Part shown: piece after piece, positions 4,645 to 63,984 of the stretch
Layout of the letters: each line of letters begins with the position of its first letter
How positions within the stretch are numbered: position 1 is the first letter of the stretch
Assembly (NCBI RefSeq): GCF_006345805.1
Contig: NC_043018.1
Location: 12,772,001 to 12,836,000 of the forward strand
Length of the DNA stretch: 64,000 bases
Source of the DNA: Octopus sinensis
Taxonomy: Eukaryota
Direction: 5' to 3'
Made by a program: the position numbers and the translations under genes
Notes under the pieces: model-generated
Databases searched by the model: none
The model's input: only the letters and a program-made list of their open reading frames with translations
What the model was told of the DNA's origin: nothing

Positions 4645-21704
<17,060 letters not shown>

Positions 21705-22042
21705 CATTTCAAAACAAATATAATCTGTATCTTGTTCTGCCTGAAGTTTCTCATCAGCCATTTAATTTCCTTCAATTTTTTTCTGCCCCTACATTTGAAT
21801 TTTCCTCTTTGTAGGCTCAGTCCCAATCTCAGTACGTAATCTGTGGCCTAGTAATAAAAGAACTGATTTAACTGTTATGTCTTGTTTCTACATTACATAT
21901 AAAATTATATATAATATATATACACACAATAAAATTCATATACGTAATCTTATCTCAGTTCTGTATCTAATAAGTTTTTTTTGTTTTTTTTTCATGGGGG
22001 TGGGAATTTGAAACTTTGGAAAATCACTTAAGTATTTCTATA

Positions 22043-22048
22043 AATAAA
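22043..22048 (+). terminator. Likely PSMD4 polyadenylation signal
   Basis: AATAAA about 340 nt after the stop codon, at the end of a U-rich, repeat-free 3' UTR. Confidence 0.55.
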
Positions 22049-27286: not shown

Positions 27287-30200
27287 TTAGTTAGGAACTG
27301 CAGAGAAAATTTCACACAAGTCCAAGCCCGGTTTCGGATTATAAGAGAGCCACCGACACATGGGGCATGCATAACTCATTCTATACAACCAACGTAATAT
27401 ACAGCATTCATGAAAGAAATGAGCACAGGGAAGGCCACAAATGTCAGCACCAATTACAAAATCTTCCAAACATATCACACATTGGCTTGTCTGTAGAAAA
27501 CCATCAGGCACCAACTTGTAATTTTCAGAGCAGACAAGATGGTTTGCTTCTCTGGCGTTGGCCTTTGAGGATGCAGAACAGAGAGAATTGTGCTTGCATT
27601 CGTCTGCACTCGAGGCCGAAGAGTGTTTTCTTTTGTGTAAAGGACAGCAGACATCATTCGATTTACGAGACTGCTGCTCTTCTGACAGATCTGGTGGAGG
27701 TGAAGTTGAGACACAAGATTCAGACGAGGCTGCATTCCTTTGCATACAACCACAGCAGTAATTTCCGTCCATCATTTGAATTGCAGGGTTATCCCCGGAT
27801 TCAAAATCTGGTGAACCTGAGCAAAATCCATGATTCGGTGTAGCAATTAAATTTTCAACATCATCTTTATGAGAACATTTTAGCTTTGAATTTTCATTGT
27901 GGTTAAGTACTCTGCCATATTTCCATCGAGGTAGGTGTTTAATGTAATCACTGGAGACCACAGATTGCATCTCGGTGACTACTAAATCAGGAAAGTGTCC
28001 AAACAACATGTCGCTGCTTTCCAGCAGATACATCGCGTACAAGCCCCCTGGATGTACTATTTGGAAAGACGGATTTAACAAGGGGTTAAAGTTTAACAGC
28101 TGAGCAAAGTTGAACCAATCGAATTCATCTTCGGCAATCATACCATTCTTCCGTTTGTACTGGATGTATCCAACCAGTAAAGAATACAAGGAAAATGTCC
28201 CTAATAGTAGATATCGGCTGTTACTGTAAAAAATGAGATCTTTCCGAATGATGCTTCCAATAGACGAGCCGCTGAGGAAATGCAGGGCCAGCAAACCCCA
28301 TTCCAAAAGTATTTCAAAATAAGACAACTGAAAGAGAGCCAGCAAAGGCTGCCACAAAATAATAAGTACAATATTGTATTTAATACAACAGCAGATAAGG
28401 CGGAGCAGTCGGCGAAACAGACTTCCTTGACTGAGAAACAATTCAAACCAACCCATTAAATTGGTAACAATCAAACTTAAAATAAAGAAATCATTCACTT
28501 CAGGATATAAGGACTTGAGAAAATTTTCCATTGATCGAAACGTCAACAATTCACCTGGCCGCGAGCCATAAACAAGGGTTTTGCCGGGGGCTATCACAAA
28601 GCAAGCAGGAGGCTTTAGTTTCAGACGAGCTAGAGTTTCTTTTCCTGATCCAGATTTAGAATTCATAGTCCCAAAACGTACACGACCTGGAAATTTAACA
28701 CTGAGAGCCGAGAATATCAGCGGTATGGATGCCAACTCCGTGAAGAGGACAACCCGGATTTCATATTTTTTTTGGAAAGACAGCCATTCTCGCTTTAACT
28801 CATCGTAGTCGGCAATTTGCTTCACTTTTCGATTCAGTTTATTCTTTACCCATTTAAACATGGAACTGGGTTTGGCAGGTCCATTGTAAACATACATAAC
28901 AACATTGGCTTTAGTTTTGAAGTTCTCAGGGAGGGATAAGATGACTTGGGACGAATACCAACCCTTATTTCTGCATAACCTGAAATGAGAAAGAAAACAA
29001 AAAAGATTAATTTATTTTAAGAACCCAAAAACACATGCAGTGTAAATAGAACAGACGTGTGTGTTTGTGTGGGGTGCATATATACACATATATGTATTCG
29101 TGTGCATGTGTGTATACACATATATATGTATTTGGATGTGTATAAAATGTGTACATTTATTTTTAACTGATATCAGAGGCTTGGCTCAATGTTTCCACAA
29201 ACAAAGACTACAGAGAGAAACATTTTTTTTTTCTGAAATTCTATCCCACAGCTCAGGCCTTTTACGTTCTTGTGAGCTGGAGGGTGATAAAAATAAATGT
29301 GCACATCTTTATTTTGATCCTATCTGCTTATACTAAATACACACACACGTATGCATACATTAGGGGTACCAAAATGTAATATTACATTCAAGTAAGGAGT
29401 TTAAATCAGCATAAAATATTTCATAAATATATTTATTTATTCAAAATATAATTGCTGTTCTTAATAACATTTTCCCACTGAGAAACTAGTTCTCCGATTC
29501 CTTAGGTTCAAAATTCAGGCTCTTTCGATGTTTTAAATGCTGTTTCAGCATTGTCCATTTCTGAATATTTTTCAACTGGTAAAGTTTACGAGTGGCTCAA
29601 ATAAGTGAAAATCTGATGAGGAGAGAACGTGAGGTACAGCTGCCCAACCTGAATGAATTTATCTTCTCTTGGGTTAGCTTTGCAAAATGTGGTCTTGCAT
29701 TATCATAAGGTACCCACTTCTCTATACCCACTTGCCCAATCTGTTTGAGATGATCCTGCACAGTAGGCCACCCTTATAATTTGCCATGGATCCTTTTCAA
29801 TTGCTGTTTTCACTGCATTGTTATTGAGAACAGCTGGTATTCTTGAGTGATAACAAAAGATGGAAATCACAGTTTTTGTCAATTTTGGCATTTCTAAACA
29901 CTCACACCAACAGGATATACAGTATATAATATGTCTTCCCGTGCAAGTGTTGAGTTGTTGCCCTTATGAAATTGATAACGTCCTTGTTTTCCAGACAGAA
30001 CATATTCACATTTGTTTTGTTAACTCTATGCTGATTGGTTGATAGTAAGGACACCTTTCATTGGTTTCTAAGCTATTGGTGGGATGACATCACACTATTT
30101 GCTTGGAACTATATTCCTTTTCGGTACCCTTGATACACATGTGGGAACAGCTCTTACTTCAGCCATTACAAACATGGAGCACTTCTCATTAATTCCCACA

Positions 30201-36900: not shown

Positions 36901-39193
36901 CTGAGCCAACGTGGTCCCTTTACTTAATCTTCTAATATTCATACCTTATCGTTGTAAAGAAGGGGCAGACAGCGAAAAACAAATAAAACGCGGCATACCT
37001 ACACAAGTTTTCACCCTCGCCATTCTGTTTCCTCACAACTTTCAGGAAAATGGATATTTTTTAATGAAATTTTCTACAAGTACGCTTAGAATGGCAAAGA
37101 TTTCGATTATATCGAAATCTGTGGTAAAAAAATCTTTTCCGAGGGCAGGGCGAGGAGTTTCGGAAAATACACACCGGTTGGCTTTGTTTCCTCATAACTT
37201 CAGAAAAATGGATATTCTTTCGTAAAATTTCCTTCAAATACTTTCAGGATGTGTAGATTACGATTATATCAAATTTTAGCTCACGTAAACACATATCTAC
37301 AAAATGAAACTTATTTCCAAAGAAAATTGTCATGTGTCAGTCTGTATGTGTACGAGTCCATCATTTTCTTTTTTCCGTATTAAATTCCGATATAATCGTA
37401 ATAGACACACTCTGAAAGGTATTTGTAGGAAATTGCATAAACAAATACCCGTTTTTCTTAAAGTTATGAGGCAACAAAGCCGTCCCGTGTGAATTTTTCT
37501 AAACTCCCCACACCACCCACGAAAATTTTTTTCATATTAAATCCTGAAATAATTGTAATCTGCACCATCTGAAGCGTATTTGCATAAAATTTTATAAGAA
37601 AATATCCATTTTTCTGAAATTATGAGGAAACAAAGTCGAGAGGACATGCTATTTGGTATGGCTACAAATGTGCCACCCCCGAACACTATCTCAAAGGTAT
37701 TTGTATTAAATTTCATGAAAATTATGAGGAAGCAAAACTAAGTTTTGTGAATTTTCAGAGATTCCCCTCCCCACACACGGAAAAATATTTTCACAACAAA
37801 TTCCGAAATGATCACAATCTGCATCATCTGAAGCATTTTTGTAAAATTTCTCTATTTTTCTAGGAGTTGTGAGAAAACAAGGAGGGGGGTGGATCACACT
37901 TGTGTTTACCTTTAATTACAACAAAGTCTTTTTTCTAACGTAAAATGTTGTTTCTTTTCAAAGATTTCCCTGCCAAGTGCACCTATAATTATTTCATCTT
38001 TAGGGCATCCCGAAGTCAACAGAATTCGTATTAAGGGGTATCTAGGATTATTTTAGCTTAAATATTCCCACTTTTCAATGTTGTAGGATGTGGTTTGAGA
38101 GAGATTTGGCTGCTATTTCTGGCAGATCATTGGGAATTCATAAGTTTTCCTGAATTACTTTCGTTTCTCCTTTTTCTTTTTAACTCTGGAGTATTTTATA
38201 TCTCGTTTCATACGATCACTTTGGGAAATACATTTTAGAAATTAAAATTTTATCAAAAGAATTTACTTTAAAACAACATAAAATTAAACTAAGAAACAGT
38301 TTTATACACAACGGTTACTACTTCTAATTAGTTAATTAGCTAATTAACTGCTGGAAAAATTACAAGTTTTGACTTGTAAACTTTTGTTTCAGTAAACAAA
38401 CTGAATATATATATATATATATAATGTCACTATGTCGCGTACACACACACATATATAAATACGAAGGCATGGTATATTTGTTTTATTCTAAAACTTGTCA
38501 TCAAACGAATACAAACAGGTCAATTCTACAAATGTCATGCTATTGACTGTGTATGACTAATATTGCTTTAAATAAAACAACATAGTAAAGCTCCGTAATT
38601 TCTACGTGAAGACGATGGATTAAAGTTTCTTGTCCACTGGAGCATTTAGTTTACCAGTTTAATTCATGTCTAGCAATTAAAACCCAAACATAGGCATCTG
38701 TGCGTGCGCGTGTATATATATATAATCGAAATAAGCAACAAGGATATGCAAGGTAGTGTAGTATAATCACCCCATTTGATTTATAAGGATAATACCAAAC
38801 CAAATTCTGGTGCCTTTAACTGAAGTACCAAATTCATCTGAATCTAAATTTTGCTGAACTTACACACACACACACACACATATATATATACACACACACA
38901 GGTATTAATGAGTCTATTTTGGAAAGGAGATGAGAAGAGTTTACAAAGCAGAGGAACGAGGACCTACCTGTGGCTTCTACTAGACCCGTGAGTTCCTTCT
39001 TCTCCACGATGCCTTCGTATCCGACCCCTCTCTGCTCGAGAAGTGCTTTCAGCTTCTTCACGGACAGAGTCATCGGGTCGAGCAAACGGTGAGCGAGCAG
39101 ACCGGCATCGTACCAAGCGAACGTCTCCAAGAGACGAGCGATGACGAACAGAACGGCAATGTAAATGATGAGCAACACTATCCGTAGCCACAT
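27287..39193 (-). CDS. RNF103: E3 ubiquitin-protein ligase RNF103 (Kf-1), complete, 3 exons, 722 aa
   Basis: Exons 39193-38968 (226 nt), 30979-30730 (250 nt) and 28979-27287 (1693 nt). All are GT-AG with matching phases, total 2169 nt. The N-terminus MWLRIVLLIIYIAVLFVIARLLETFAWYDAG...LSVKKLKALLEQRGVGYEG matches RNF103. It is followed by a thioredoxin-like region, several hydrophobic TM segments and a C-terminal RING-H2 (CVICLEDF...LPCAHFFHECCILRWL...CPMCRW). Confidence 0.95.
29356..29930 (-). mobile_element. Mariner-family DNA transposon relic, internally deleted
   Basis: Minus-strand PAVLNNNAVKTAIEKDP (HTH), KWVP and DNARPH remnants, with a TIR-like end at about 29356. Confidence 0.65.
30230..30595 (-). 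mobile_element. Octopus-type tRNA-derived SINE, family A, near full length
   Basis: Complete head, internal microsatellite and ...CAGCATGGCC..AGTCAAATGACTGAAAC 3' end. Other copies lie at about 700-975, 22700-23037, 50390-50770, 54215-54570, 56035-56160 and 60601-60996. Confidence 0.8.
32110..33750 (+). mobile_element. RTE-clade LINE, 5'-truncated, the longest copy in the window (RT, 3' UTR, (GAT)n tail)
   Basis: AFVYLEKAFDRVP, GVHQG, YADD at 32392-32403, VVDSFCYPGDQIS and RLRWYGHVM motifs, with many stops and frameshifts. Confidence 0.85.
33262..33450. repeat. 42 bp tandem repeat, about 4.5 units, inside an RTE 3' end
   Basis: The CAAAGTGGCTGAGTTCCTTTC core recurs at 33280, 33322, 33364 and 33406. 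Confidence 0.9.
34685..35706 (+). mobile_element. Tandem non-autonomous Helitron-like elements
   Basis: Two 3' ends each consist of an ACCC..GGGT hairpin plus CTAG (35325-35355 and 35678-35706). Each CTAG is directly followed by a TC...TATAAA 5'-type start. Confidence 0.65.
36990..37900. mobile_element. Foldback-like element with modular long inverted repeats
   Basis: Units containing TGTTTCCTCA(C/T)AACTT..AGAAAAATGGATAT occur twice on + (about 37025 and 37185) and as inverted copies at about 37440, 37620, 37720 and 37865. Confidence 0.55.
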
Positions 39194-40345: not shown

Positions 40346-41249
40346 GAAATTTACAAAAAAACAAAACAAAAGAGGTCATTTAGTTTGACACTTGGGAAGG
40401 TGAGAAAGTCTTTTACGTTTCAAGCCTATGCTCTTCATATATATACATATATATATCATCATCATCATCATCGTTTAACATCCGCTTTCCATGCTAGCAT
40501 GGGTTGGACGATTTGACTGTGGACTGCCAAACCAGATGACTGCACCACACTCCAATCTTGATCTGGCAGAGTTTCTACGGCCAGATGCCCTTCCCAACGC
40601 CAGGGAGAGAGAAAGATATAACAGAACAAAAGCATAAACAAGCAAATCAACCTATTACATCTTTCTATCTCCATGTGTGAGGATGCATGGCTTAGTGGTT
40701 AGGGTGTTGCACTCCCAAATGCAAGATTGTGGTTTCAGTCTCTAGACCACATTGTCATTTTGTGTTCTGGAGCAAAACATTTCGTCACACTTTGCTCTGT
40801 GATCGTTTTGACACCTGGCGCATGGTACACAGGGCCACCTATTCAGGTGACATCAATTTGAACTAATGTGCAGCACAAACATTTGATCACAATAAACAAA
40901 TCCTTTGATCACAAGTCATTCAGTAAAAGCTGGATGCTCATAAGTCATCTTTGATGGGAGAGTCCATCATTAACATAACATATTTGAAGAGGAATTCATA
41001 AATACACACACACATATAGCAGAAAGGCAAGAAGAGTCCAGAACATGAAAAGTTCGTAATAATTCAGGTGTAGGTCAGTACCTGGTGAGGGAGAAAGAAA
41101 GTTCATAATGTTGATGTGACTCAGGTAAGTTGATCAATGGCGTCACAGGTGAAAAAAAAAAACAACTTAAAATTGATGGAAAAGGGGTGTGTAGGTAGAG
41201 CTTTACAGCTGTTTCTAGAATAGCTGCATATTTGGTGCAGATCTGTGAA

Positions 41250-42126
41250 TACGAGGAAGTACCCCCAAATATCTGTAAATGTTCTCTGTGGTACAATCCC
41301 ATTGTAGTTCAGGCTTCCCCCACTGAAGCCACTTGACGAAACCCTCAGGCATCAACCTGCTGACCAGTGCCATGTCATGCACCATTATTTTGCAGTGCTT
41401 TCCTTTTCATTGACTTTTTGTAATGGCTGAAATGAAGGAACTTCCATGAAATTCTGTTTTCTGCTGGGGAAAACAGCAGCCAAAACAGTTGTCATGCTTC
41501 AAATAGCATACAAGGATGCTGCCATGAACAAAACACAAGTTTATGAGTGGTTTTCACACTTTAGGAGTGGTCATGTGTTGCTTGAAGACCAACCTTGTTC
41601 AGGGTGACCATCGACCTCCTGAACAAATGAAAACATCATGAAAATTCATGAGCAGATCTTGAAAGACCAAAACCAAACCATTTACAAAGTTGTTTCTGTG
41701 ACTGGTTGTTGTCCTGAAGTTGCTGCCAACGAATTTTGAGTGAATAATTGCAAATGAAAAGACTTGCAATGAAATTTGTGTCTCGCTTGTTCGTGGAAGA
41801 TTGAAAGCAGTCGTGACTGAATGTGAGTCATGAACTGAAGCTGGAAGTTGATCCAGACCTTTTTTCAAAGGTCATCACTGGTGATGAAAGTTGGTGCTAC
41901 AGAAATTGCAGATGTGGAAGAGGTGAAGAAAAAACAACAGAGGTGTTAAAAGGCATCACTTCGCAGAAGTTCCAGCACTGCTTCCAACAGTGGAAAATGC
42001 ATCTGGAGTGATGCATTTCTTCAAATGGAGAATACTTTGATGATGATACAAGTGTAAACATGTAAAACTAAACGAATAAAATATACTAAAAATGCTGGGG
42101 TTTTTTTTTGAGGTACTCCCTTCAAT
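41250..42126 (+). mobile_element. Mariner-family element, internally deleted, with degenerate TIRs
   Basis: KFCFLLGKTAAKTVVML...TQVYEWFSHF and KVITGDESWCY remnants. The ends TACGAGGAAGTACCC and GAGGTACTCCCTTC are imperfect inverted repeats. Confidence 0.75.
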
Positions 42127-49403: not shown

Positions 49404-52400
49404 ATGCCAAACTTTGGTTCAAGATATACAGCGAACAGTATGGAACCTACATGTAAGTATCTCTTAAAAGGAGGAAATTTTGAGTATGTGTGAGTGGAGT
49501 GGGGTTATATAGATCAATCCGTAGTAGGACAATCCGGAACCATGTAGTTGGGAAGCAATTTTCTTGCCCTACCTGTTTTATTTTGTTTTTAACCCTTTCG
49601 TTACCAACCCGGCTGAAACCGGCTCTGGCTCTGTAGTACAAATGTCTTGTTTTCATAAGTTTTGAATTAAAATTTTCCACCAAACCTTAGTCACAATTTA
49701 TGTTCCTAACACTAGCTGAATGATAACCAAGTTATTTTAGTAAATTCTTTGTTATATTTAAAGTAATTGAAAGAAACACAAAGCATCCCAAAATAAATAC
49801 AGTAACGAAAGGGTTAAATCTTAAAAATCTATTAAATGAGTCTGTTAAACAGTTTAGTGATGCTGGCAGACATGAGACAGAGGACTGGAAACACGGTCTT
49901 CCTAGCATTGGCTTTCCTCTTCATTTCTACCATTTCTACATTAATTGTTGCCAACACATCACTGGTTTGCCCTTCAACATTTTTTCCATCCAAGGCAATG
50001 TTTAACCCAATGTTCTGCTTGATATTATTCGTAGCTTTATCAGCTTTGAGTTCCATCATTAAGAATAATTTCAATGAAATCATTCTGCATTGCTTATTTG
50101 TTCAGCTTCAACATTGAAACTCTGTCTTTTGTCTGTCCTCCATAAAACCACTCTTGCATAACATCTTTGCATATTGCAGATATTTATGATCTAAGTGATG
50201 ATGATGGTTTGATGTCCGATGCTACAACAATAATCTGTGTAAGTAAACTGAAGCCTTTTCTTGTTTTTGTGTGTTTGTGAGGATTTACCACTTCAATCAT
50301 TTCAAGATTATTTTGTATCTTGAACCAAATTCTTCTATGCAAATTTAACTTTTTGTACCTTTAAGTTTAACACACACACACACACACTTTTCATTCGGTT
50401 TCTGTCTACTAAATCTACTCACAAGGCTTTGGTCAGCCTGGGGCTATATTAGAAGACCCCTCTCCAAAGTAGGACTGATCCCAAGTCAACGTGGTTCCGA
50501 AGCAAACTTTTTTAACCATGTCTGCATAGAATTTTTTTTTTTTTGTTATTTAAAAATAACTTGCACTGGATTCCTAGTTTTATATTGATCTCTTTTGCCA
50601 AACTGCTAAGTTACAGGTACATAAACACACCAACACTGGTTGTGGAGTGATAGTGGTGGTAGGGGACATAGACAGACACACATGGTGGGCTACTTTCAGT
50701 TTGTCACTGTGAGACTAAACCCGGAACCATGTGGTTAGGCAGCAAGCATCTTACCACACAGCCACCCCGATATAAATTTACAGACACCATCTTCAAATTT
50801 GTTTTATTCTTTTCAGGTTTGTTTTCCTTCTTACATTAAATATGTTTTACAATTTCTCATTTCAGGATTCTCTGTCAGAACCTACAACAGGTAAATTTTA
50901 CTGCTTTAGTTATCAAAATATCTTAATCAGTGCATCTCAAACCAGGGTCCATATGGCCCCTGGGGTTCCACATAAGATTTTGTTGCTAGAATTTATATGC
51001 AATACAAGTTATACTTCTACAATGCATGAAATATTTCAATTTTTTTTTTTTTTTTTTACACAATTCCTAATAATATTTAATTATGAAAATATGTTGAGAG
51101 GCAGACAAATCATAAATCCTTTCAGGTAGATGGCCCTACTAGATCTGTAGAAAAGGCATTGGTAGACACTCCATGAGATGTACCTGGTGTAAGCTATGGA
51201 CACATAAGAGGTGCAGCAATATCAAAGGAAGGTTAACTAGGAAGATAGTTTTTGTGTGTGGCAGATGCAGAGGGGCAATAAACCCTGAAGATGTACAGAA
51301 AACAGATTCCATCACACACCAGGGGGAAAAACTTGAAGTAGTTGTTAACTTCCGTTACCTAGGTGACCAAGTCAGTAGCAGGAGTGGATGCTCTGAGAGT
51401 GTAGCTGCTAGAATCAGAATAGGCTGGGCAAAGTTCAGAGAGCTCCTACCTCTGTTGGTAACAAAGGACCTCTTTCTCAGAGTGAAAGGTAGACTGTGAT
51501 GCATGTGTGCGAGCAGGTATGCTACATGGCAGTGAAACATGGGCTGTGATTGCTGAGAACATGCATAGGCTTGAAAGGAATGAAGCTAGTATGCTTCACT
51601 GGATGTGTAATGTCAGTGTGCATATATGACAGAGAGAAAAGTAGGACATGGGAAGCATCAGTTGTGGTGTGCAAGAGAGAGACGACTGTGCTGGTATGGT
51701 CATGTGATGCATATGGATGAGGACAGCTGTGTGAAGGAGTGTTTCACCCTTACAGTGGAGGGAACCTGTGGAAGAGGTAGACCCAGGAAGACATGAGATG
51801 AGCTAGGGAAGCATGACCTTCGAACATTGGGCTTCATAGGCAATGACAAGTGACCTTTGGAGATATGCCATGCTTGAGAAAATCCAGCAAGACAAGTGAG
51901 ATCATAGTCATTGCCCTTTTAAAAGCATCCTTCAATCATTGGGCAATATGCCATGCTTGTGAAGACTGAGCGAAATCGTAGTCGTGGCCGATGCCAGTGC
52001 CGCCTGACTGGCACCTATGCTGGTGGCACGTAAAAAGCACCATTTGAGCGTGGTTGAGGCCGGTGCTGCCTGACCAGCTCCCATGTCGGTGACATGTAAA
52101 AGTACCCACTACACTCCAGAGTGGTTGGTGTTAGGAAGGGCATCCATCTGTTGAAACCTTGCCAAATCAGATTGGAATGTGGTGCAGCCTCCCAGCTTGC
52201 CAGATCTCTGTTAAACCGTCCAACCCATGCCAGCATGGGAAGCGGACATTAAGTGATAACGATGATCATGATGATGACGATCAAATGATTGGGAGGGTCC
52301 AACTGAGCAAAACAAGAATGAAAGGGGTTCCACAGGTAAAAAATGGTTGATGACCACTGACGTAAGTGTAACTATGAGGGATGCGGAAGAGTTCCTGGTT

Positions 52401-55400
52401 TTCAGTGAAAGAAAAAAAAAGGAGGATCAGTTGATTATAATTTTATTTAATATATTCCCCTCTCAGATTCACACACTTAGTGCAGCGGTCCTTCAGTTTT
52501 TCTAAAACCTGCAAAAGAACTCTGAATGTTGGGTCTCCAACCAAGCTTTTTGTGATACCCTTAAAGCCAGGAACTTTTCAGCACTCCCTCACATTTTAGT
52601 CAAATTGTATTTATTATAAAAGCCCTGTTGCACATTCCCAATGTTACAGTATTTATTTGTGCATAATTTGCTCTTTTGTTTGAGATTTTAAACTGTACAA
52701 AGTAAGGATTTATGAGAAATAAATGTTTGCACTTTTCCCACATCTGCATCCTATTGAATGACCATGGCATCAGTTCCTCCTGTGCTCTTGAGTACATTGT
52801 GCAGCACATTAACCCCACTGGCTTCTGTTGGTTTAAAGTTTTCCCTACATCTGGTCATGTGATATTGGCCTTTCTTTCATGAGGCACCTGTGCCAGTGAG
52901 TGATTTCCATGAGGTGCCTGTGCCAGTGAGTGACGCCGGCACTTGGATGCCAAGTTCTGTCAAGAGAGCAACTGTAATGCATCCGTAGGGATGGTGTTCA
53001 TATTTGTGTGATCAGCTGATGAAAGATTCACTGTGATAAAAGCTCCCAATTTAAATTCATTTTAATGAAAATTGGATGGAAACAGAGAGTGATGGGAATC
53101 CATGAAAGCAGCGAAAAAAGACTGGCAAAAAAGTTCCAGAATGCTTCTTACCAATTCCATCAAACGTTGGCCCTCATGCATTTACAGTTGTTGGTGCAGG
53201 CCATCACCAAATGTGACGTTGTCTCTCACCTCTCCACATAATCTGTTAAGGCTTTTATATCCTCTTCTTTTTTTCTATTGAAGATAACCTTCATGACATG
53301 AGCTGCTACATTTCTGATGATGTGGTCAGTGAGGAATCTATTATAATATGTGTAAGTATAAAGGTCTTCCTTCCTGTGAGGGTTCAATCACTTGTCTTTC
53401 TCTTTGCTAACTTGGAATTGTTAACTCTTTTAGCATTCAGGATTACCCTGTCAAATGCAATGCTTATTAATTCACATTATTTTGAATTAATCATGTATTA
53501 TCTCAAAGCTTCAAGATTATGATGATGTGATTGTTTAATTTTAAATAACATTGCAGGGTAGGTGTGACTGGCCAGATCTGGCCAAGTTTAAGCATATGAA
53601 TATGGCCAGTCTAAATGCCAATGGGTTAACCTATCAACAGTGTGTTTGTCTAACCTTTTCTAGGAAGCAATATGTAAATGAAAAATTATTTCTGTTGTAT
53701 GACAATGAGATCTGGAACCATTATTGGTATATTATTCATACGCGTCGCCTTACTAGCACTTGTGCTGGTGGCACGTGAAACATTCGAGCGAGGTTATCGC
53801 CAGTGCCGCTGGACTGGCTCCTGTGCAGGTGGCACATAAAAAGCACAATTTGGGTGTGGCCGTTGCCAGTACCACCTGACTGGCTCTCGTGCCGGTGGCA
53901 CGTAAAAGCACCCACTACACTCTTTGAGTGGTTGGCGTTAGGAAGGGCATCCAGTTGTAGAAACTCTGCCAGATCAGATTGGAGTCTGGTTCGCCAGACC
54001 TCAGTCAAATCGTTCAACCCATGCTAGCATGGAAAGCGGACGTTAAATGATGATGAATATGTCCAGGCAGGTTTAGACACAAAACATGCTGGTTGCTATA
54101 GTGTATGTCATAGGAGAATAACTTCTCCCTTTTACAAGAATATCACTTGGATCATTGGTACATAGGATTCTGGGACACCGTTATTAAATGATTAAAATGA
54201 ATCCAAATTATATGGCTGTGTGGTAAGAAGCTTGCTTACCAATCACATAGTTCCAGTTTCAGTTCCACTGTAATGCACCTTAGGCAAATGTCTTCTTCCA
54301 TAGCTTCAGGCCAGCTAAAGACTTGTGAGGGAATTTGGTAGATGGGAACTGAAAGAAGCCTGTAGTGTGTGTCCGTGTGTCCACCATCACTGGCTGACAA
54401 CTGATGTTGATGTTTTTATGTCCCTACAACTTAGCGGTTTGGTAAAAGTGACTGATAAAATAAGTACTAGGCTTAAAAAAAAAAGTCTTGGGGTCAATTT
54501 GTTCGACTAAAACCCTTCAAGGTGGTGCCCCAGTATGGCCACAGTCAAATGACTGAAACAAGTAAAATAAAAAAAAAACACACACACAAATTCGTTTCAC
54601 AAATTTCCATCTGTTCCTTTGGGGGTTTTATCCAAAATCAATTATATTCATTCTTCTCAGCCCCCAGACGATTGTCCAGTCATATGTTTTCTTTGGTGGT
54701 GGTCAGATTTATGACATTGTTTCAATTACTTTAGTCTTCTCTATTTCACATCTCACCAGGTTCTTCATCATTTAGCATCCATTTTCCATGCTGGCAGACG
54801 TTGGATGGTTTGATTGGAACTGGAACGCCAGACAGTGGCACCAGGCACCAGTCTGTCTGTTTTGGTTTGCTTTCTACGGCTGGATGCCCTTCCCACACTC
54901 CAAGAGTGTAGTGGGAGCCTTATACGTGTCACTGGCACATGTGCCTCATATACACCACTGGCACAAGCACTTTATATGCACCGTGTACTGGCGCAAGTGC
55001 CTCATGTGTCACTCACTGGCACAGGCACCTCATAGGCGTCACTCACTGGCACAGGCGCCTCATAGGCGTCACCTGCTGGTACAGGCGCCTGATATGCGTC
55101 CCCTCTGGCAGAGGCGCCTGATATGCGTCCCCTCTGGCACAGGCGTCTGATATGTGCCACCCGCTAGCATGGGTGCCTGGCACCTGACACGTGCCACCTG
55201 CTGGCATCTCATATGCGACACCGACTGGCACAGGTGCCTTATTTGCATCACTGGCACTGGCCTATTTTCAATCTATTCTCATCGCCAAGTTGAGAGCTAT
55301 GAGTGTGTTTGGAAGCAACCAAGAAGTGCTGTGAGCAAAATATTAAACTCAGTTTGTGAATTTAACCAGTCATGTGCCAACTGTGGACTGAAAACACAAA

Positions 55401-56315
55401 GTCACCTTGAATTTTAGTGCAGCTCATCTGATAAAGAGCCATTCTCATGCAGCCCACATGAAAATCCTTGCCAAAGCTGGAATCCATCATCATCATCATT
55501 TAATGTCTATGTTTCCATGCTGACATAGGTTGGACAGTTTGACAAGGGGCCAACAGGTCCCAAGCACCGCATCATGCTTCAGTGTCTGTTTTGGTATTGT
55601 TTCTTTGACTGGATGCCCTTCCTAATGCTGACCCCTTCACAAAGTGTACTAGATGCATTTTTTTTTTGTGCCACCGACACTAGTGAGCTTGCAAGTCTAT
55701 GAAAACCAAGGGTTTGGGCTTTATGCTAGGCAGATGAGAGGGTCAAGGTGTGAAAGAAGCGAGTGGGGCACAGCAGGTTCTTGTTATAGGGAACTTACAT
55801 GACTACTTACATTTAGGTGAGAGAACTGAAACCAGTTGTAGCTGCTTCGGTCTAATGGAGGTGATGGTCATCTCCTTCACTTCACTCACTTGGTGGCTGG
55901 TGACATTTATTTTTCTACAATTTCTCATTTCAGGACACTCCAAGAAGAATTACAAGAGGTAAATTTTTTCATAATTTTTAAACATTTTAATTCTCACTTT
56001 TTATTTTATTATATTTAAAAAAAGAAATTTATATACATAGGTGCAGGTGTGGCTGTGTGGTAAGAAGATTGCTTCCCAACCACATGGTTCTGGGTTCAGT
56101 CTCACTGCATGGGATCATGGGCTGGCCAAAGCCTTGTGAGTGGATTTCGTAGACGGAAAAGCAATTGTGGTGAAGCAATTAGCTGAACCCTAATTATAAT
56201 TATGTGGATAATTTTACCTATAAAGGTCATTTTAACGTACCGATCTACTTGGTAAAATTATTAATTGATTGATTGATTAATTAATTAATTTGATTAATAA
56301 ATTTTACCCTTCTAT

Positions 56316-56346
<31 letters not shown>

Positions 56347-59300
56347 GTGTATATATATATACATGTATATATATACAGGTGTATATGTATCTATACATGT
56401 GTATATATATATATATATATACACGTGTGTGTGTGTATATATATACATGTATGTATATATGTTTATATATTTGTGTGTATATGTATGTATATGTGTGTTC
56501 TTATATAGTACGTATAGGACTACCTGGTGGTCCCTTCCCCTATCACAGAACTGTGTGAAATCTGTATTGTTGTCTTTGATGTTTGTTTGTATCGGAAGGG
56601 CGGGGAGCTGGAAGAACTGTTGGCATGCCGGGCGAAATGCTTTGCAACATTTCATCCATTGTCACGTTGTGAGTTCAAATTCCGCTGATGTTGACTGTGC
56701 CTTTCATCTTGCCAGGATTGATAAAATAAGGTACCAGTTGAACAGTGGGATCGGTGTAATTGACTTGTCCCTTCCCCTGAAATTGCTGGCCTTGTGTATA
56801 ACACTTGAAACCGATATTTGTTAGTAATTTTACTTGTATATCCTGTTTTAGGTGCTGTACATACACGCAGAACAGCTGCAACAAAAAGATTACGGAAGCA
56901 AAATCGTTCGAAAAATAATGTAAGTAAACAAAATTTGTTTAGTTGACGCCTATAATCTGAAATGTCCATTAGATACTTTGTCCATCTTCTGAAATATCTT
57001 GGCTGGAGTGGATAGCGGCAGTTAAATTTTGAATTCTGATACTTGTTTTTCAAATGAAGCATTTTATATTTCACTATTCTTCACACTCAGTGAAAAGTAA
57101 AATATACATTTCATTGGTTTTATCTTGTATCTGAGAATATAGTTTCTTCTTTGTTGAATGCTTCCTTTATGGTGATAACGTTGATGACTCTGTAGACCAA
57201 TTCTTGCATCGAAGATTTGATGCTATTGACTGAATGGCAATGTTGGTGGAGGACGAGGCTGATTTTGTCAAGCCTTTCTCTCCTGGTAGCATGTACCACG
57301 CTAGGTGCCTGTATAATCACTAGCAGATGCAGACACTCTCTTATATAAGTTATATCCATCGTCACACATATATATATATATCACGTGACCGACCAGGCTA
57401 TCAGATGTTGCTACACATCGCTGGTCACAATGCACTTTGCATTGTTTTAGCCTTCAAATGACGCCACCCTGCTGGCTAAACGAGCAGGCCTACATAAGAA
57501 AGAGTGAGAGAGTACAGCAGGGATCGCCACCACCCCTGGCGGAACCTCGTGGAACTTTAGGTGCTTTCGCTCAATAAAGACTCACAACGCCCGGTCTGGG
57601 AATCGAAAGCGCGATGCTACGACCGCGAGTCCGCTGCCCTAACCACTGGGCCATTGCACCTCCATGTAAGTTATATAATCCCATATTTTTCAATAAAAAC
57701 ATTAACTCAATCCTAATGTTTTCTAGGGCAGCAGAGAAAGCAGGTCAGCCTTGATTGACCAGACTCCTATGATCCATTGTACCTGTGACCACCTGGTCTT
57801 TTCTCTCATAGCTTATCTCAGACTGTATTATTATCAAGTATGTTCACCTTTGTCTTATTTAAAAGATGGTAGGCTGCCATTGATATATTTGGCTATTTCT
57901 AACTGATCGAATGATAAAATAGAGCCTCTTGCAATGGTTTGTATGGAAGTTAGCATTGCAGCCAAGATGTGCAACAGAAAACCTGTTGCCTGGGCTTCAT
58001 GGCAGATCTAGCTTTGATTTCTCTCATATCATTATCAATCAGCTTTCTATGATTGAGTGGATTGGGTACATTTTTTGTTTATTTCCATGGCAACAGCATC
58101 ACCGAGGAGATCATCTAACTCACAAGACTAAAGAGTTCTTGGTATCTGTTTTTCTGCTGATAGCCATAAACAGTTGATTCAAAAGGGCAGAGAACAACCA
58201 GCTGGGAGAGACTTGGTGAATCCTCTGCTATCATTGTTCTCTGCTGGTGACAAGACATTCGGCTTTCAATTTACAGTCCACATTGTATGCAGTTTGATAG
58301 TTTAGAGTGCTGACATCAAATTTGTTTATAGAATGTGTTAACACTGATAGACTAGGATTTAAACTGGCCCCCATATCTGGCCCAAATACTGTACCTATTT
58401 TATGTCCAAAGTAGCAAGATCTGGCCTCTCACACCCACCCTACAATGTTATTCCAAAAAGATAAAATCAAATCACTGTAATCTTGAAGCTTTGATATAAT
58501 GCATGATTAATTGAAAATAATGATTTCAAATTCTGGTACAAGGCCAGCAGGAGGGGGGGGATAACATTTCTCTGTTGAAATATGGTTTCAATTAATTTTG
58601 AAACTAATACTCTCTTACTCTTTTACTTGTTTCAGTCATTTGACTGCGGCCATGCTGGAGCACCGCCTTTAGTCGAGCAAATCGACCCCAGGACTTATTC
58701 TTTGTAAGCCTAGTACTGAGGAATTACAACCAGTTAGGATCCAGTTAGCTCAAGACATCATCAGGAAGAACCATGTCCGGTTTCGGCCCCTACTCCTCTA
58801 CCGTTTTGACGTGGCGGGGCCCCCCCTTTCGGAGGTGTCTTCAGCTCTGGTGTTGGGTGCACGTCTTCTTTTTTCTGTTCCCTGGCATCTTCGATGTATT
58901 GTCAGCCAGTGACTGACTGTCTTGTCAAATTTCTCCCTTTAAATACCTGCCGCATAGGCTCCAGCAGGCAGCCCCAGCAAGTTGTCATGTGACACTGTCT
59001 CACCTTAACTGACTAATGAAAGCACATAGCTTTAGCCCGCGCTTTTTCTAAACGACCGTCACCTGTCAGTCAGCTTGTCTCACCTAATGATGTTATTTCC
59101 CGTCGGCGTGTTTATGACTTTCAAGCCATTTTCGGTCTTCCCGCTTCAGCCATATATAGAAGCTGGCTTTTTCGACCACCTCCTGTACTCTCCTTATTAG
59201 TTTTCGCAGCTCGGGACTAGAAAAGACAAATCTTCTTTTGAAAAGCGTTGTCATTTTCTTTTCAATGAAGCCTCTAGCCCCCACTGCCAGGTGATAATAT

Positions 59301-59842: not shown

Positions 59843-60751
59843 CGGGCTTCTTTCAGTTTCTGTCTACCAAATCCACTCACAAGGCTTTGGTCAGCCCGAT
59901 GCTATAGTAGAAGACACTTGCCCAAGGTGCCATGCAGTGGGACTGAACACAGACCCATGTGGTTCGTAAGCAAGCTACTTACCACACAGCCACTCCTGTG
60001 CCTAATGAAGAATTTTGTAAAATAACTTCTTATTATTAAACTGCTATTTGGAACTCTATATAATTAACATCAAATTTTAATGGAAGGTTTTAAATTAGAT
60101 AACCTTAGAACACAAAGCACGTATCATAGAGCCAGGACTGATCTCAGTCTAGTTGATATCAAAAGGATTAAACTAGAAAGAAAAACTCAACAACCATTTC
60201 AAGTGTCCACTCAGTCGTATAGTAATAAAGTTCTAAATCAACTTTGGCTAATTTCTTTTCTGCTAATTTTTATTTATTTATTTATTTCCTTTCAGAATAT
60301 TGGCAGTTCAGCAAATGGTAAGAAAACTTCTTTAATTATCAAACTGGGTTGTTTTTATTTGAATAAAATTTTAATGTTTTCATTCAACATCAAATATTTT
60401 CCAGTTTTTGCCCTTTCTGACTTTCGCTTTTTTTCTTTCCTTTTGCCCTTTTGGAGCAACTTTTGTTATCACTATTTAACATTTCTCTCTCTCTCTCTCT
60501 CTCTGCACACTAGGAACAGCATTAGTTTAAAATAAAATATTATATATATTCTTTTATTCTTTTACTTGTTTCAATCATTTGAATGCAGTCATGCTGGAGT
60601 AGCTGTGTAGTAAGTAGCTTGCTTACGAACCACATGGGTCTGGGTTCAGTCCCACTGCATGGCACCTTGGGTAAGTGTCTTCTACTATAGCCTCGGGCCG
60701 ACCAAAGCCTTGTGAGTGGATTTGGTAGACGGAAACTGAAAGAAGCCTGTC

Positions 60752-60791
<40 letters not shown>

Positions 60792-63700
60792 ATGTTTGTG
60801 TGTCCATGTTTGTCCCCTCACATTGCTTGACAACCGATGGTAGTGTATTTACGTCCCCGTAACTTAGCGGTTTGGCCAAAGAGACTGATAGAATAAGTAC
60901 TAGGTTTCCAAAGAATAATTCCTGGGGTTGATTTGCTCGACTAAAGGCAGTCCTCCAGCATGGCCACAGTCAAATGACTGAAACAAGTAAAAGAGTAAAT
61001 CTATAGGGAGAGGAAAATGTGAAATCTATTACATTATTTTAAAATTTTCTTATTTTCCTCTTTTACAGATCCTATATTGATTGCTGATGAACCTATAATT
61101 GAGGTTAGTCGATGACTTTATTTTACCTTCTGTGTTTCCTCCAAACGTTATTGACAAAAAAATTTAGATAATTAGGAAAAACCAACTCAAATTTTTTCAT
61201 ATTAGTTTTGTCTGTTACTGTGCCATGATACTAACCTGTAATTTCTGTGTGAACATTCTGCGAGTCAAGTTGAAAGCAGTGTGTGTTCATCATCATCATC
61301 ATCGTTTAGCGTCCGTTTTCCATGCTAGCATGGGTTGGACGGTTCTACTGGGGTCTGTGAAGCCAGAAGGCTTCATCAGGCCCAGTCTGATCTGGCAATG
61401 TTTCTACGGCTGGATGCCCTTCCTAACGCCAACCACTCCGTGAGTGTAGTGGGTGCTTTTTACGTGCCACCCGCACGTTGCAAATACTAAACGCTAAAAC
61501 ATTACTCACATCTGTAATGTGTTGGTAAATGAATTTTTATCAGTCAACTCAGTGATTCTCAACCACTTTTTACCTTTGATCCCCTTTCATTCCTATTTTT
61601 CTTGGATAGGCTCCCATATACTTTTGATGTTTTAAAAATCCGATTTTCTATTAAATATTAAGAATTGTGTAAAATAAATTGTTACAATATTTTGTGTATT
61701 GAAGAAGTATATATTAGTTTCAAATATATATATATATATAGGTGCATACACACACACACACACATATATATATATAGAGATGTAGAAGTAAATCAGTTAT
61801 ATTAATTTATTGCACATATATTTTAAAATCTTATATAATCCCCTCTGAGGGCCATTTTCTTGTGAGGTGGTCATGGGGAAATCTGACACTGAGGCAGATC
61901 CAGCTGGTTTCCTTGAACATTTCCTCATCCAAGAAGAGGGTTGGCTTCATCGCTTTGAGCCAGAGACAAAAAAACAACCAAGGTTATTTCATTTGCAGGG
62001 AAGGTGATGGCCTCGGTGCTTTTGGGATGCAAAAGGCATTGTGTCTATTGACTATCTTCAAAAGGGTTACACCATAAATGGAGATTACTATAGCAACATG
62101 ATGAGGCAGTTACAGGAGGTTATCAAGAACAATCACTCAGGTAAACTGACGAGAGGGATCTTGCTTCATCAGGTCAATGCTCCAGCATAAAAGCTCTTGC
62201 TTTCAAATGGCTGCTGTGTGACTGTGTCCTTGAATTTGTTGATCAGCCTCCTTATTTTAGTGGTTTGGCTCTATCATCTGTTCCCCAATGTGAAAAACCA
62301 ATTCGCTGGGAACCAGTATCACAGTGATGATGATGATGATGATGTCATATCTGCTGTTGATGGCATTTTTGACCACCAGGATGAAAACTTGTTCACCAAT
62401 GGGATCCAAGCACTGCAACATGGATGAAAGAAGTGTGTGGATCACAAAGGGAACTTTGTTGAAAAATTCACTTCATTTGCTCACATTCCATGAACGTATC
62501 TTGGTCAGCCTATAAACTTTTCAGCTGGCCCTCATATGCAGAAATATTTGCTTAGGAAAATTTTCAATCTTTGGAGTAGGTGTTGCCAGTCCCAACATTT
62601 GCACCTTGGGCAAATGTTTATTCTATAACCTTGGTCCAATCGAAGCCTTGTGAGTGGATTTGGTCGATGGAAACTGAAAGAAGCCCATCATATGATGTGC
62701 GTGTGTTACTGTCTCCTTGCCTTGACTTCATTCATCATCATCATCATTGATAATTGTAAATGAAAGTCGTCGTCATGCAACTGGTGTCCTTCGTTTTCAG
62801 TCTTCTGTTGTAACCAATGTCTGATTATGGGCGATATCACCTTCCTTACAGCATCTGGCCGTAGAAAATCTGCCTCAACAAATTCCATCAGAGCCACACT
62901 AGCATGGACAGAGTGGACATTAAATGATGATGGAGCCTAGATCCATGTTTAATTTAGAAAAGTGAGAGTCATTGGTGTAAATTAGCAAATTTTTCTCAAT
63001 TATTTTTTCACACAATTGAGTAGAATAGAAAAAAAAATTTCAATATTTTTATTGAATTCTAATTTTGCTTTTCTAAATTCTATTTTTACAGAGCAGTTCA
63101 AATAGAGAAAATGTGGCATCGACGTCAGAAACTGAATCAGAGTAGGTTTTCAAAATCTGAATATCTGCCTTTTGTTTTTTTCTAATCTATTTTAATGAAG
63201 AAGGTACAGCATGGGCAAAAGGTTAAGTTTCACAACCACAAAGTCTCAGGTTGGATCCTACCGTGTGGCATTTTGGGCAGATGTCATTTCCTAAAGCCTT
63301 TTGTTGACCCATATCTTGGGACTAAAATTGGGTAGATGGAAACTGTATGCAAGCCTGTCGGGTGGATTGTACTTGTAATACAAAATATATCCAACTGATT
63401 TTATCTGTGAATCACTTTAAGGGTACTCATGTCTGTAGAATGCTTGGCTATGGACATCTTAATTCAGAAAGTAATTCATTTGAACAGCTGAATCCTTATT
63501 GACAAACAGCAAAGATACATGGTTATAATTAATCTTCTTTGAAGGAGATACCCATTTGTATGTCTTGCTCATTTCCCATGTAGCATGTGGTTTAGTGTGC
63601 AATAAAGAATGTTGTACATCTGCTATGAATGTACCCTGTAAACTAAACCAGGGCCAAAACTGGAGTGTGAGGCTTCTTGCTCCAAGTCTACAATAGCCCT

Positions 63701-63984
63701 TACCTATTCTGTCTTCCTTTCTAATTCTGCCAACTATATCTGGCAGTTGGATTGAGCCTGCTGAAAAAGGCCTGCATCATAGCTATGAATAGAGCTTACA
63801 AACCAGAAATCTTTCCAATAAATAACTTTATATCATATATATTAGTCTCAGGTGCAAATATTTTCTCTGTGGTTTTCAAATCATAAATGATTCTAGAATT
63901 TTCCATTTTGTCTTTATTTGTAGATCACAAAGAACCTCCCCAGCAGCTCAGATCTGTCCATTGTGTTTGGAGACATTTGAAAAT
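49404..63984 (+). CDS. RNF4: RNF4-like SUMO-targeted RING E3 ligase, 5' partial (154 aa; the RING continues past the right edge)
   Basis: Exons 49404-49452 (exon acceptor at 49364), 50180-50238, 50866-50890, 53284-53351, 55934-55958, 56852-56919, 60296-60317, 61069-61103, 63092-63141 and 63924-63984. All are GT-AG, in phase and stop-free. Product: MPNFGSRYTANSMEPTYIYDLSDDDGLMSDATTIICDSLSEPTTDNLHDMSCYISDDVVSEESIIICDTPRRITRGAVHTRRTAATKRLRKQNRSKNNNIGSSANDPILIADEPIIESSSNRENVASTSETESESQRTSPAAQICPLCLETFEN. It has several SIM-like motifs, an Arg/Lys-rich segment and a RING start CxxC. The last exon runs phase 2 to 0 and ends just after CxxC, as recalled for human RNF4 (CPICMDGYSE|). Confidence 0.7.
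49589..49817. mobile_element. piggyBac-type MITE, family 2 (221 bp plus TTAA TSDs)
   Basis: TTAA|CCCTTTCGTTAC ... GTAACGAAAGGG|TTAA: a perfect 12 bp TIR with a TTAA duplication. Confidence 0.85.
51125..52270 (+). mobile_element. RTE-clade LINE 3' fragment with (GAT)n tail
   Basis: RCTWCKLWTHKRCS...FVCGRC, FRYLGDQVS and WYGHVMHMD motifs, followed by the family 3' UTR. Confidence 0.8.
52373..52594. mobile_element. Mariner-type MITE (about 220 bp)
   Basis: Imperfect TIRs of about 30 bp: TATGAGGGATGCGGAAGAGTTCCTGGTTT and AAAGCCAGGAACTTTTCAGCACTCCCTCACA. Confidence 0.65.
54930..55260. repeat. About 29-30 bp GC-rich minisatellite built on a CTGGCACAGGCGCCT core
   Basis: Repeated CTGGCAC/AGGCGCCT units attached to a minus-strand RTE tail element. 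Confidence 0.85.
57378..57665 (-). mobile_element. tRNA-derived SINE, family C (GC-rich, little decayed)
   Basis: A-box TGGCCCAGTGG and B-box-like TTCGATTCCC in the head, a non-tRNA body and a (TA)n tail. Confidence 0.7.
58718..59712 (-). mobile_element. HERO-like RLE non-LTR retrotransposon 3' fragment nested in a SINE
   Basis: KRPDLVLWNRDQRMGILLELTVPWEENIGNAEEQKEKRYEKL and GARGF...KASFYIWLKR are typical of the HERO-type RLE C-terminus. A 3' UTR of about 380 nt follows. Confidence 0.75.
60601..60996 (+). mobile_element. Octopus-type tRNA-derived SINE, family A, full length
   Basis: Head with a B-box-like GGGTTCAGTCCC, an internal (TA)n and the 3' tail GAAACAAGTAAAAGAG. Confidence 0.8.
61850..62536 (+). 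mobile_element. Mariner transposase 3' fragment with right TIR
   Basis: GKVMAS...WDAKGI...DYLQKGYTINGDYY and HQVNAPA (HQDNAP) remnants; ends ...AACTTTTCAGCTGGCCCTCATA. Confidence 0.75.

Follow-up and report, generated by a model that had tools for sequence, protein, structure and literature searches.

What is the history of two short exon pairs that sit in one octopus gene and whose microexons share the same splice sites? The question is raised by a stretch of 64,000 nucleotides (nt) from Octopus sinensis (NCBI RefSeq assembly GCF_006345805.1, contig NC_043018.1, positions 12,772,001 to 12,836,000 of the forward strand), hereafter called the window, to which all coordinates refer. An RNF4-like gene, most of which lies at 49.4-64 kb of the window on the plus strand, is head-to-head with RNF103 and contains an exon A with a microexon B, followed by an exon A' with a microexon B'. 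The first-pass annotation had regarded A+B and A'+B' as two copies of one unit encoding a SUMO-interaction motif (SIM), gained in a lineage-specific manner by duplication of an exon pair. We arrived at a different overall reading, which we hold to be probable: the gene is an RNF4 orthologue, its SIM array split over short exons is old, and the island of identity between B and B' is secondary.

The exon chain was extended from A, B, A', and B' by a scan with simple splice-site scores. This gave ten short, phase-consistent coding exons between 49404 and 63984, the last of which begins the RING finger at the edge of the window (the window ends 16 bases further on). The exons are listed below; here and elsewhere, a slash marks an exon-intron boundary or a splice junction.

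49404-49452, plus strand: e1, the first coding exon, found by the scan; (MPNFGSRYTANS)MEPT plus 1 nt, donor gtaagt.
50180-50238, plus strand: exon A, 59 nt, phase 2 to 0; IYDLSDDDGLMSDATTIIC, acceptor ...attgcag/, donor /gtaagt, ending in ...SDATTIIC.
50866-50890, plus strand: microexon B, 25 nt, phase 0 to 1; DSLSEPTT plus 1 nt, an acidic/Ser linker.
53284-53351, plus strand: exon A', 68 nt, phase 2 to 0; NLHDMSCYISDDVVSEESIIIC, ending in ...SEESIIIC/gtaagt.
55934-55958, plus strand: microexon B', 25 nt, phase 0 to 1; DTPRRITR plus 1 nt, one Asp, after which the basic patch begins.
56852-56919, plus strand: basic exon, 68 nt, phase 2 to 0; (G)AVHTRRTAATKRLRKQNRSKNN, a candidate arginine-rich motif.
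60296-60317, plus strand: third microexon (m3), 22 nt, phase 0 to 1; NIGSSAN.
61069-61103, plus strand: exon A3, 35 nt, phase 2 to 0; (D)PILIADEPIIE, SIM-like.
63092-63141, plus strand: predicted Ser/acidic exon, 50 nt, phase 0 to 2; SSSNRENVASTSETES.
63924-63984, plus strand: RING-start exon; SQRTSPAAQICPLCLETFEN/gtaatt, with the remainder of the RING past the window end.

All ten exons lie in single-copy sequence amid multi-copy repeats, as determined by a self-BLAST of the window. From A to A3, "long" exons running from phase 2 to 0 (59, 68, 68, and 35 nt) alternate with microexons running from phase 0 to 1 (25, 25, and 22 nt), making seven consecutive exons with lengths of 2 or 1 modulo 3. 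None of these exons is a multiple of 3 by itself, and skipping any one of them would shift the frame, whereas each adjacent pair is a multiple of 3 (84 nt for A+B, 93 nt for A'+B'). The acceptors of A and A' score weakly, that of A' reading AAG/. The exon at 63092-63141 was called entirely from splice scores, phase, and length bookkeeping against annotated products, with no orthologue seen. A possible alternative start ATG of e1 is present at 49440. Candidate exons at 57812-57837 (LISDCIII), 46204, and 47399 (G/GTAAATTTT) were dropped, as they had no Argonauta counterpart or no usable acceptor.

The chain was then compared with those of other octopods. In Argonauta hians, orthologues of e1, A, B, A', B', the basic exon, and the 22-nt and 35-nt exons were present in the same order and phase with strong splice sites. 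In O. bimaculoides, orthologues were found for e1 through the basic exon, again with order and phase kept and with good splice sites. The orthologues of e1 were the annotated start of the coding sequence (CDS) in O. bimaculoides (locus L004, 4797-4749) and ATGGAGATGACAT/gtgagt in Argonauta (locus L002, 6199-6187). Exon A measured 71 nt in O. bimaculoides and 68 nt in Argonauta, microexon B 25 nt (DSLSQPTA) and 16 nt (DSSNT), exon A' 65 nt (NIHDMSCFISDVVSAEPITIC) and 68 nt (NVDLSCYISEATPEEVETITIP), microexon B' 25 nt in both (DNPRRIAR and DTPQSSSR), and the basic exon 68 and 53 nt, respectively. The Argonauta orthologues of m3 and A3 were 22 nt (AISNSPN) and 35 nt (PILISDEPTRE) long. Every difference in exon length between species was a multiple of 3 (+12 and +9 nt for A, and -9, -3, and -15 nt elsewhere), and the chains of both species translated without stop codons.

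Product lengths told the same story. Up to ...TFEN, the chain amounts to 157 amino acids (aa) in O. bimaculoides and 137 aa in Argonauta, totals which assume that exons unseen in these two loci have their O. sinensis lengths. With 49 aa more, each total equals the annotated product length (206 and 186 aa) exactly, and the annotated isoforms therefore include both units. On this sequence evidence, A, B, A', and B' are genuine coding exons and both units are included. When read directly, all coordinates and sequences of the four exons in the first-pass annotation were correct, and their placement in an RNF4-like RING gene was upheld; their order, phase, and length class are kept in O. bimaculoides and Argonauta.

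A 2.27 kb block of multi-copy repeats in the A'-B' intron (53372-55639) is absent from O. bimaculoides, where this intron is 316 nt long versus 2582 nt in O. sinensis. Around microexon B (50806-50985), the two species are ~98-100% identical over ~60 nt upstream and 95 nt downstream, the 25-nt microexon body itself differs at three positions, and identity averages 89% across the surrounding block. The conserved intron flanks of B may represent constrained splicing signals. In exon A of O. bimaculoides (L004, 4551-4621), the extra CAACCAATCATT resembles a local duplication of the following CAACAATGATC; the 3' part of this exon is thus not structurally stable across the genus.

The 5' end of the gene is drawn differently in the 244-aa model of O. 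vulgaris, where the CDS starts at the position corresponding to 41137-41190 (MASQVKKKKQLKIDGKE/gtgtgt), 8 kb further upstream and beside a mariner remnant. In O. sinensis, the A-run of this "exon" has one base fewer, and the CDS of O. bimaculoides and Argonauta begins at the orthologue of 49404-49452. As the difference in the A-run would break the O. sinensis frame, the 5' extension is doubtful, and the O. vulgaris model is probably over-extended at this end.

If the exons are old, are the two pairs copies of one another? They share their phases (2 to 0, then 0 to 1) and a microexon starting with D[S/T/N], the B-type exons opening with GAY and then a codon for Ser, Thr, or Asn. A length of 68 nt is common to three of the four A-type exons (A and A' of O. 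sinensis and Argonauta), a SIM-b-like core is equally placed in A and A', and the splice-site sequences of the two pairs are alike in Octopus. Similarity between A and A' is confined to a 16-nt 3' end (ATAATMTGT/GTAAGTA), 7 nt of which are donor consensus, and BLAST misses the A/A' pair. The introns of the two units carry different multi-copy repeats in O. sinensis, and in Argonauta unit-to-unit similarity is limited to a GAT microsatellite. Between the genera, the exons correspond one-to-one: SCYIS is found in A', DDDD in A, and the first exon bases of B' are identical at eight of nine positions between Octopus and Argonauta. Since both units are present in Argonauta, any duplication must be older than the divergence of Octopus and Argonauta. 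At its 3' end, Octopus A matches Octopus A' at 11 of 18 positions, Argonauta A' at nine, and its own Argonauta orthologue at three. Here the paralogue resembles A more closely than the orthologue does, which is what homogenisation within Octopus, or a loss on the Argonauta side, would produce. The array may well have arisen by duplication of an exon pair, as the alternating phases suggest, but such an event would be old.

The closest likeness between the units is at the splice sites of their microexons. The only two copies of the 20-mer TACAATTTCTCATTTCAGGA in the window are at 50848 and 55916, while at least two matches were obtained in none of 100 shuffles of the window, even when three mismatches were allowed. 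The two copies are the following.

50848-50867, plus strand: 20-nt 3' splice-site module of B (TACAATTTCTCATTTCAG/GA).
55916-55935, plus strand: the same 20 nt as the 3' splice-site module of B'.

In the self-BLAST, the match of B to B' (60 nt, 78% identity, E = 4.5e-5) was unique and belonged to no repeat family; the same similarity was recovered in O. bimaculoides (E = 4.5e-7). Both donors read AG/GTAAATTTT. The equal length of 25 nt, the 20-nt acceptor run, the common donor, and the different multi-copy repeats between the two microexons were thus confirmed as originally described. The exon bodies are identical at 14 of 25 positions, and the flanks beyond about -22/+11 are unalignable. The 20-mer is unchanged at both B and B' in O. 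sinensis and O. bimaculoides, with nearby aligned non-coding sequence diverging by roughly 11-14%. In Argonauta, the B' acceptor is different (...accttctag/) and lacks the 20-mer, and the donors of B and B' both read GTAAGTTT, as opposed to GTAAAT for both in Octopus. No TGC-type enhancer motif was found in the 24 nt upstream of B or of B'. An 11-mer at 20392 was rejected as a further candidate, since no open reading frame follows it.

The island shared by B and B' is best read as the outcome of secondary homogenisation and/or selection, and not as a fossil of a recent duplication. This is where our reading departs from the first-pass annotation. A comparison of orthologs, run in O. bimaculoides and Argonauta, found the same two A+B units in both species. 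A gain of SIM units specific to the Octopus lineage is contradicted by the orthology of both units in Argonauta hians. Nor is the splice-site similarity a relic carried by all descendants, as the Argonauta B' acceptor differs and A ends in ...SVSQ there.

We next consider what the exons encode. The motif I[YH]DL[SD]DDD at the start of A is conserved in the three species (O. sinensis core IYDLS, followed by an acidic run), and so is [LIV](H)D[ML]SC[YF]IS at the start of A' (O. sinensis core LHDMS). The Asp that opens B and B' is conserved, the hydrophobic run at the end of A' is partly conserved (IIIC, ITIC, and ITIP), and a further SIM-like motif, NDPILI[AS]DEP, is conserved as well. IIIC is followed by a basic stretch, DTPRRITR-GAVHTRRTAATKRLRK. 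The order of a hydrophobic run and an arginine-rich motif, IIIC and then DTPRRITRGAVHTRRTAATKRLRKQNRSK, is kept in O. bimaculoides and is weaker in Argonauta. In RNF4, the arginine-rich motif (residues 73-82) directly follows SIM4 (PMC8161396).

These patterns bear on the earlier proposal that each SIM is assembled across a splice junction, with a hydrophobic core at the exon edge and an acidic residue from the microexon. SIM-like hydrophobic and acidic motifs are indeed encoded, but the conserved cores lie at the 5' ends of A and A'. As a common motif, IIC/D fails for unit 1, where Argonauta A ends in ...DDDSVSQ/DS, and is only loosely kept for unit 2; B' contributes one Asp and then turns basic (TPRRITR). 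Because IIC/D is poorly kept and B' is mostly basic, assembly of the SIMs across splice junctions holds only loosely, and it was too strong to say that an acidic microexon completes each of them.

Identity of the gene was assessed from its annotated orthologues and from its layout. The annotations of O. vulgaris, O. bimaculoides, and Argonauta hians each place a small RING gene (product of 244, 206, and 186 aa, respectively) head-to-head with RNF103, and the products of these orthologues match the Pfam families zf-RING_5, zf-RING_UBOX, and zf-RING_2. For comparison, human RNF4 is 190 aa long and its residue 132 is a Cys (PMC12930501); its SIM2 and SIM3 are of the VDLT type and are the main SUMO-chain binders (PMC3901395), and an RNF4 SIM2,3 peptide reads TVGDEIVDLTCESLEPVVVDLTHND (PMC4083429). 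The length sums (206 and 186 aa) indirectly indicate a similarly small octopus protein with the RING at its extreme C-terminus, a position that RING dimerisation requires in RNF4-type ligases. If Cys132 of human RNF4 is the first RING cysteine, as we presume, 59 residues run from this Cys to the end, as in the octopus protein, and 49 residues follow the tenth residue from the Cys, equal to the octopus tail. Judged from sequence, the match between the octopus protein and RNF4 is architectural, without alignable sequence. A resemblance of the RNF4 SIM2-SIM3 linker CESLEP to C/DSLSEP at the A/B junction was rejected, the alignment being like that of shuffles and the motif being absent in Argonauta. 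The gene very probably corresponds to the octopus RNF4 orthologue, encoding a small SUMO-targeted RING ubiquitin ligase.

Several points weigh against the reading that we favour. We infer inclusion of the exons from conservation and annotated product lengths. A profile-profile comparison of unit 1 and unit 2 with hhalign was not significant (probability 1.2%, P = 0.046), and there was no intron similarity between the units, even in O. bimaculoides with its 316-nt A'-B' intron. The notion of two copies of one unit is borne out in part: phase, length class, and Octopus splice sites speak for it, while the hhalign result and the weak exon similarity do not. Argonauta was the sole outgroup, and the B' acceptor and the 3' end of A may have changed in either lineage. 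Strict SIM consensus is not always matched, as Y or H occupies core position 2 and a Cys ends IIIC. The part of the RING inside the window comprises the first two cysteines, C-P-L-C (...QICPLCLETFEN). The rat RNF4 SIM2,3 peptide aligned to the octopus protein no better than its shuffles did (1212/5000).

Four other explanations were weighed against the same data. If a two-exon SIM module had been duplicated in tandem recently and in a lineage-specific manner, leaving the 20-nt identity as a remnant, this would account for the equal length, phase, acceptor, and donor of B and B' and for the similar 3' ends of A and A'. We find it very improbable, since the Argonauta orthologues of A, A', B, and B' are each closer to the Octopus orthologue than to the paralogue, the introns of the two units are dissimilar even where the repeat block is missing, and the unit profiles do not align significantly. 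B and B' might also have converged on a GTAAAT donor and on a 3' splice site that is near-optimal for octopus, which we consider less likely than not. The acceptor of the last exon of RNF103 (28992-28980, minus strand) carries 13 of the 20 bases that B and B' share (TTTCTCATTTCAG, then G), and they are kept there in three Octopus species; the 13-mer has three copies in the window, all of them real acceptors. Its presence at an unrelated acceptor means that the whole-window shuffle overstates the improbability of the 20-mer for two acceptors. By hand count, the RNF103 acceptor agrees with the 24-nt B flank at about 17-18 of 24 positions, and Argonauta B agrees at 17 of 24. Part of the B/B' identity may therefore reflect convergence on a favoured acceptor. 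What remains particular to B and B' is the extra TACAA (5 nt upstream), the exon length, the Asp codon, and the donor, in two exons that also agree in phase and are neighbours in one gene.

The remaining two explanations concern the use of the exons and the identity of the protein. A+B and A'+B' might be alternative or mutually exclusive cassettes, in which case mRNAs would vary in SIM number. Pair lengths of 84 and 93 nt would allow this, and the weak acceptors of A and A' and the ~99% conservation of the B intron flanks versus the 89% background are compatible with it; we consider it unlikely, as inclusion of both units accounts exactly for the annotated product lengths of O. bimaculoides (206 aa) and Argonauta (186 aa). 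The gene might also encode another small RING protein with an acidic disordered N-terminus, whose hydrophobic runs are no SIMs. Consistent with this, only C-P-L-C of the RING falls within the window, a PDB sequence search gave no RNF4 match, and the rat SIM2,3 peptide gave no significant one. Absence of significant similarity to known RNF4 is expected because the region is disordered and the informative RING lies outside the window, and the size, the order of elements, and the C-terminal RING with RNF4-like spacing all fit RNF4 (PMC8161396, PMC12930501), so that this alternative, too, strikes us as improbable.

Under the reading that we prefer, that of an RNF4 orthologue with an old short-exon SIM array and a secondary B/B' island, alternating short exons and microexons would encode a disordered SUMO-binding N-terminus, with A, B, A', and B' as four consecutive members. 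The protein would consist, in order, of a SIM-b-like motif, an acidic linker, a second SIM-b-like motif, a hydrophobic run, a basic patch, a further SIM-like motif, a Ser/acidic stretch, and the C-terminal RING. Such a protein could read SUMO chains or multi-SUMOylated substrates in a multivalent manner and then ubiquitylate them through its RING, a function that is likely by analogy with RNF4. As the alternating phase pattern suggests, the array may have grown by duplication of a long exon together with a microexon before the divergence of Octopus and Argonauta, after which the copies would have diverged almost wholly. The splice-site island of B and B', restricted to the genus Octopus, would stem from a short gene-conversion tract and/or from selection for one strong 3' splice-site module.

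A more far-reaching version is that short-tract conversion gave the Octopus microexons one splice module, that selection kept it, and that skipping of exon pairs sets the number and spacing of SIMs. We regard this as speculative and rather improbable. Regulated skipping of a pair would stay in frame, since any two adjacent exons add up to a multiple of 3. If the proposal is true, B and B' would be under common control and SIM valency would be tunable by splicing, a splicing-level dial for the length of SUMO chain read by the ligase; together, conversion and selection for co-regulated inclusion would make a small case of concerted evolution of splicing signals.

No new way of lineage-specific SIM gain has been shown at this locus, and what we describe is an ordinary, old gene structure. 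Its value lies in a well-supported gene model for a cephalopod RNF4, with a SIM array split over unusually short exons, and in microexons of 16-25 nt that are traceable across octopods by phase and synteny. Annotation is helped by this, given that the public 244-aa model of O. vulgaris appears over-extended at its 5' end.

The genomic neighbourhood agrees between species. The stretch belongs to O. sinensis chromosome CM016880.1 and is 94-97% identical to O. vulgaris. Besides the RNF4-like gene, two genes were delineated in the window.

27287-28979 (last exon) and 38834-39193 (first coding exon), minus strand: RNF103-like gene.
~17223-22708, plus strand: VWA+UIM gene of 404-405 aa, with its end near 22708.

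A minus-strand open reading frame of 536 codons (27287-28897) is 100% identical to an Octopus RNF103-like protein, and the cluster of this protein includes members from O. vulgaris, O. sinensis, and O. bimaculoides. The VWA+UIM gene is probably that of the proteasome ubiquitin receptor PSMD4/Rpn10. The RNF4-like, RNF103, and VWA+UIM genes form a trio of ubiquitin-system genes whose synteny extends to O. vulgaris, O. bimaculoides, and Argonauta; the VWA+UIM gene lies beyond RNF103. The RNF103/VWA pair is present in the fetched O. sinensis locus, whose flank ends before the RNF4-like gene, and the two are also neighbours in the cuttlefish Acanthosepion pharaonis. The annotation of this cuttlefish has no RING gene upstream of RNF103, where degenerate patterns for PILI[AS]DEP and for the RING start were also unmatched.

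Protein-database searches with the spliced A-B-A'-B'-basic and m3-A3-S-RING-start peptides gave no matches, including to octopod RNF4-like proteins. RNF103 proteins of the same genomes were readily found in that database, and the RNF4-like genes are themselves recorded with product lengths and Pfam matches. The empty searches were not counted as evidence against the exons. The single match of a RING-start translation search was a spurious repeat protein and was discarded. Rfam and tRNA scans of the window were both empty.

Remnants of transposable sequence were also observed. Mariner/Mos1-type transposase remnants (Pfam HTH_48 and Transposase_1) are located at 41431-41604, upstream of e1 and inside the probably over-extended O. 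vulgaris model, and at 62008-62424, in the intron before the predicted Ser-rich exon. The B-A' intron holds a repeat with four copies in the window (51099-51914), whose open reading frame fragments show a weak PHD/C1-like zinc finger and whose tail (...RLCWYGHVMHMDED...GRGRPRKT) resembles the C-terminal part of LINE ORF2.

Finally, we compared the octopus gene with known systems. Vertebrate RNF4 (SNURF) is of similar size (190 aa versus about 190-206 aa) and has an N-terminal SIM cluster with two VDLT-type motifs (PMC3901395, PMC4083429); both proteins place a basic/arginine-rich patch directly after a hydrophobic SIM or SIM-like run, followed by a Ser/acidic stretch and a C-terminal RING (PMC8161396). 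Unlike RNF4, the octopus protein spaces its IYDLS and LHDMS cores by about 29 residues instead of about 10, holds Y, H, or M in these cores in place of V or L (RNF4 SIM2/3 [IV]VDLT), and has an extra PILIADE after the basic patch. The literature on vertebrate RNF4 exon structure yielded nothing usable. Drosophila Degringolade (Dgrn) and yeast Slx5/Rfp1/Rfp2 differ from the octopus protein in size and in partner requirements. They are SUMO-targeted ubiquitin ligases that combine multiple SIMs in a disordered stretch with a RING (PMC8161396), a layout that the octopus protein would share.

With tandem exon duplication in general, the octopus array shares adjacent exons of the same phase and similar length and a unit that is a multiple of 3, which keeps copies in frame; it differs in that the unit is an exon pair, that very little sequence similarity survives outside the splice sites, and that the copies appear to be used together. 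In avian ANP32A, an exon duplication added SIM-like sequence whose inclusion depends on splicing (bioRxiv 10.1101/274613). That case involves another gene and lineage and a single recent duplication, whereas the octopus units are old and both included. Like other animal microexons (at most about 30 nt), those of the octopus gene are short (25, 25, and 22 nt), encode part of a disordered region, and, at B, have intron flanks that are more conserved than the exon itself. In contrast to these, skipping of one octopus microexon alone would break the reading frame.

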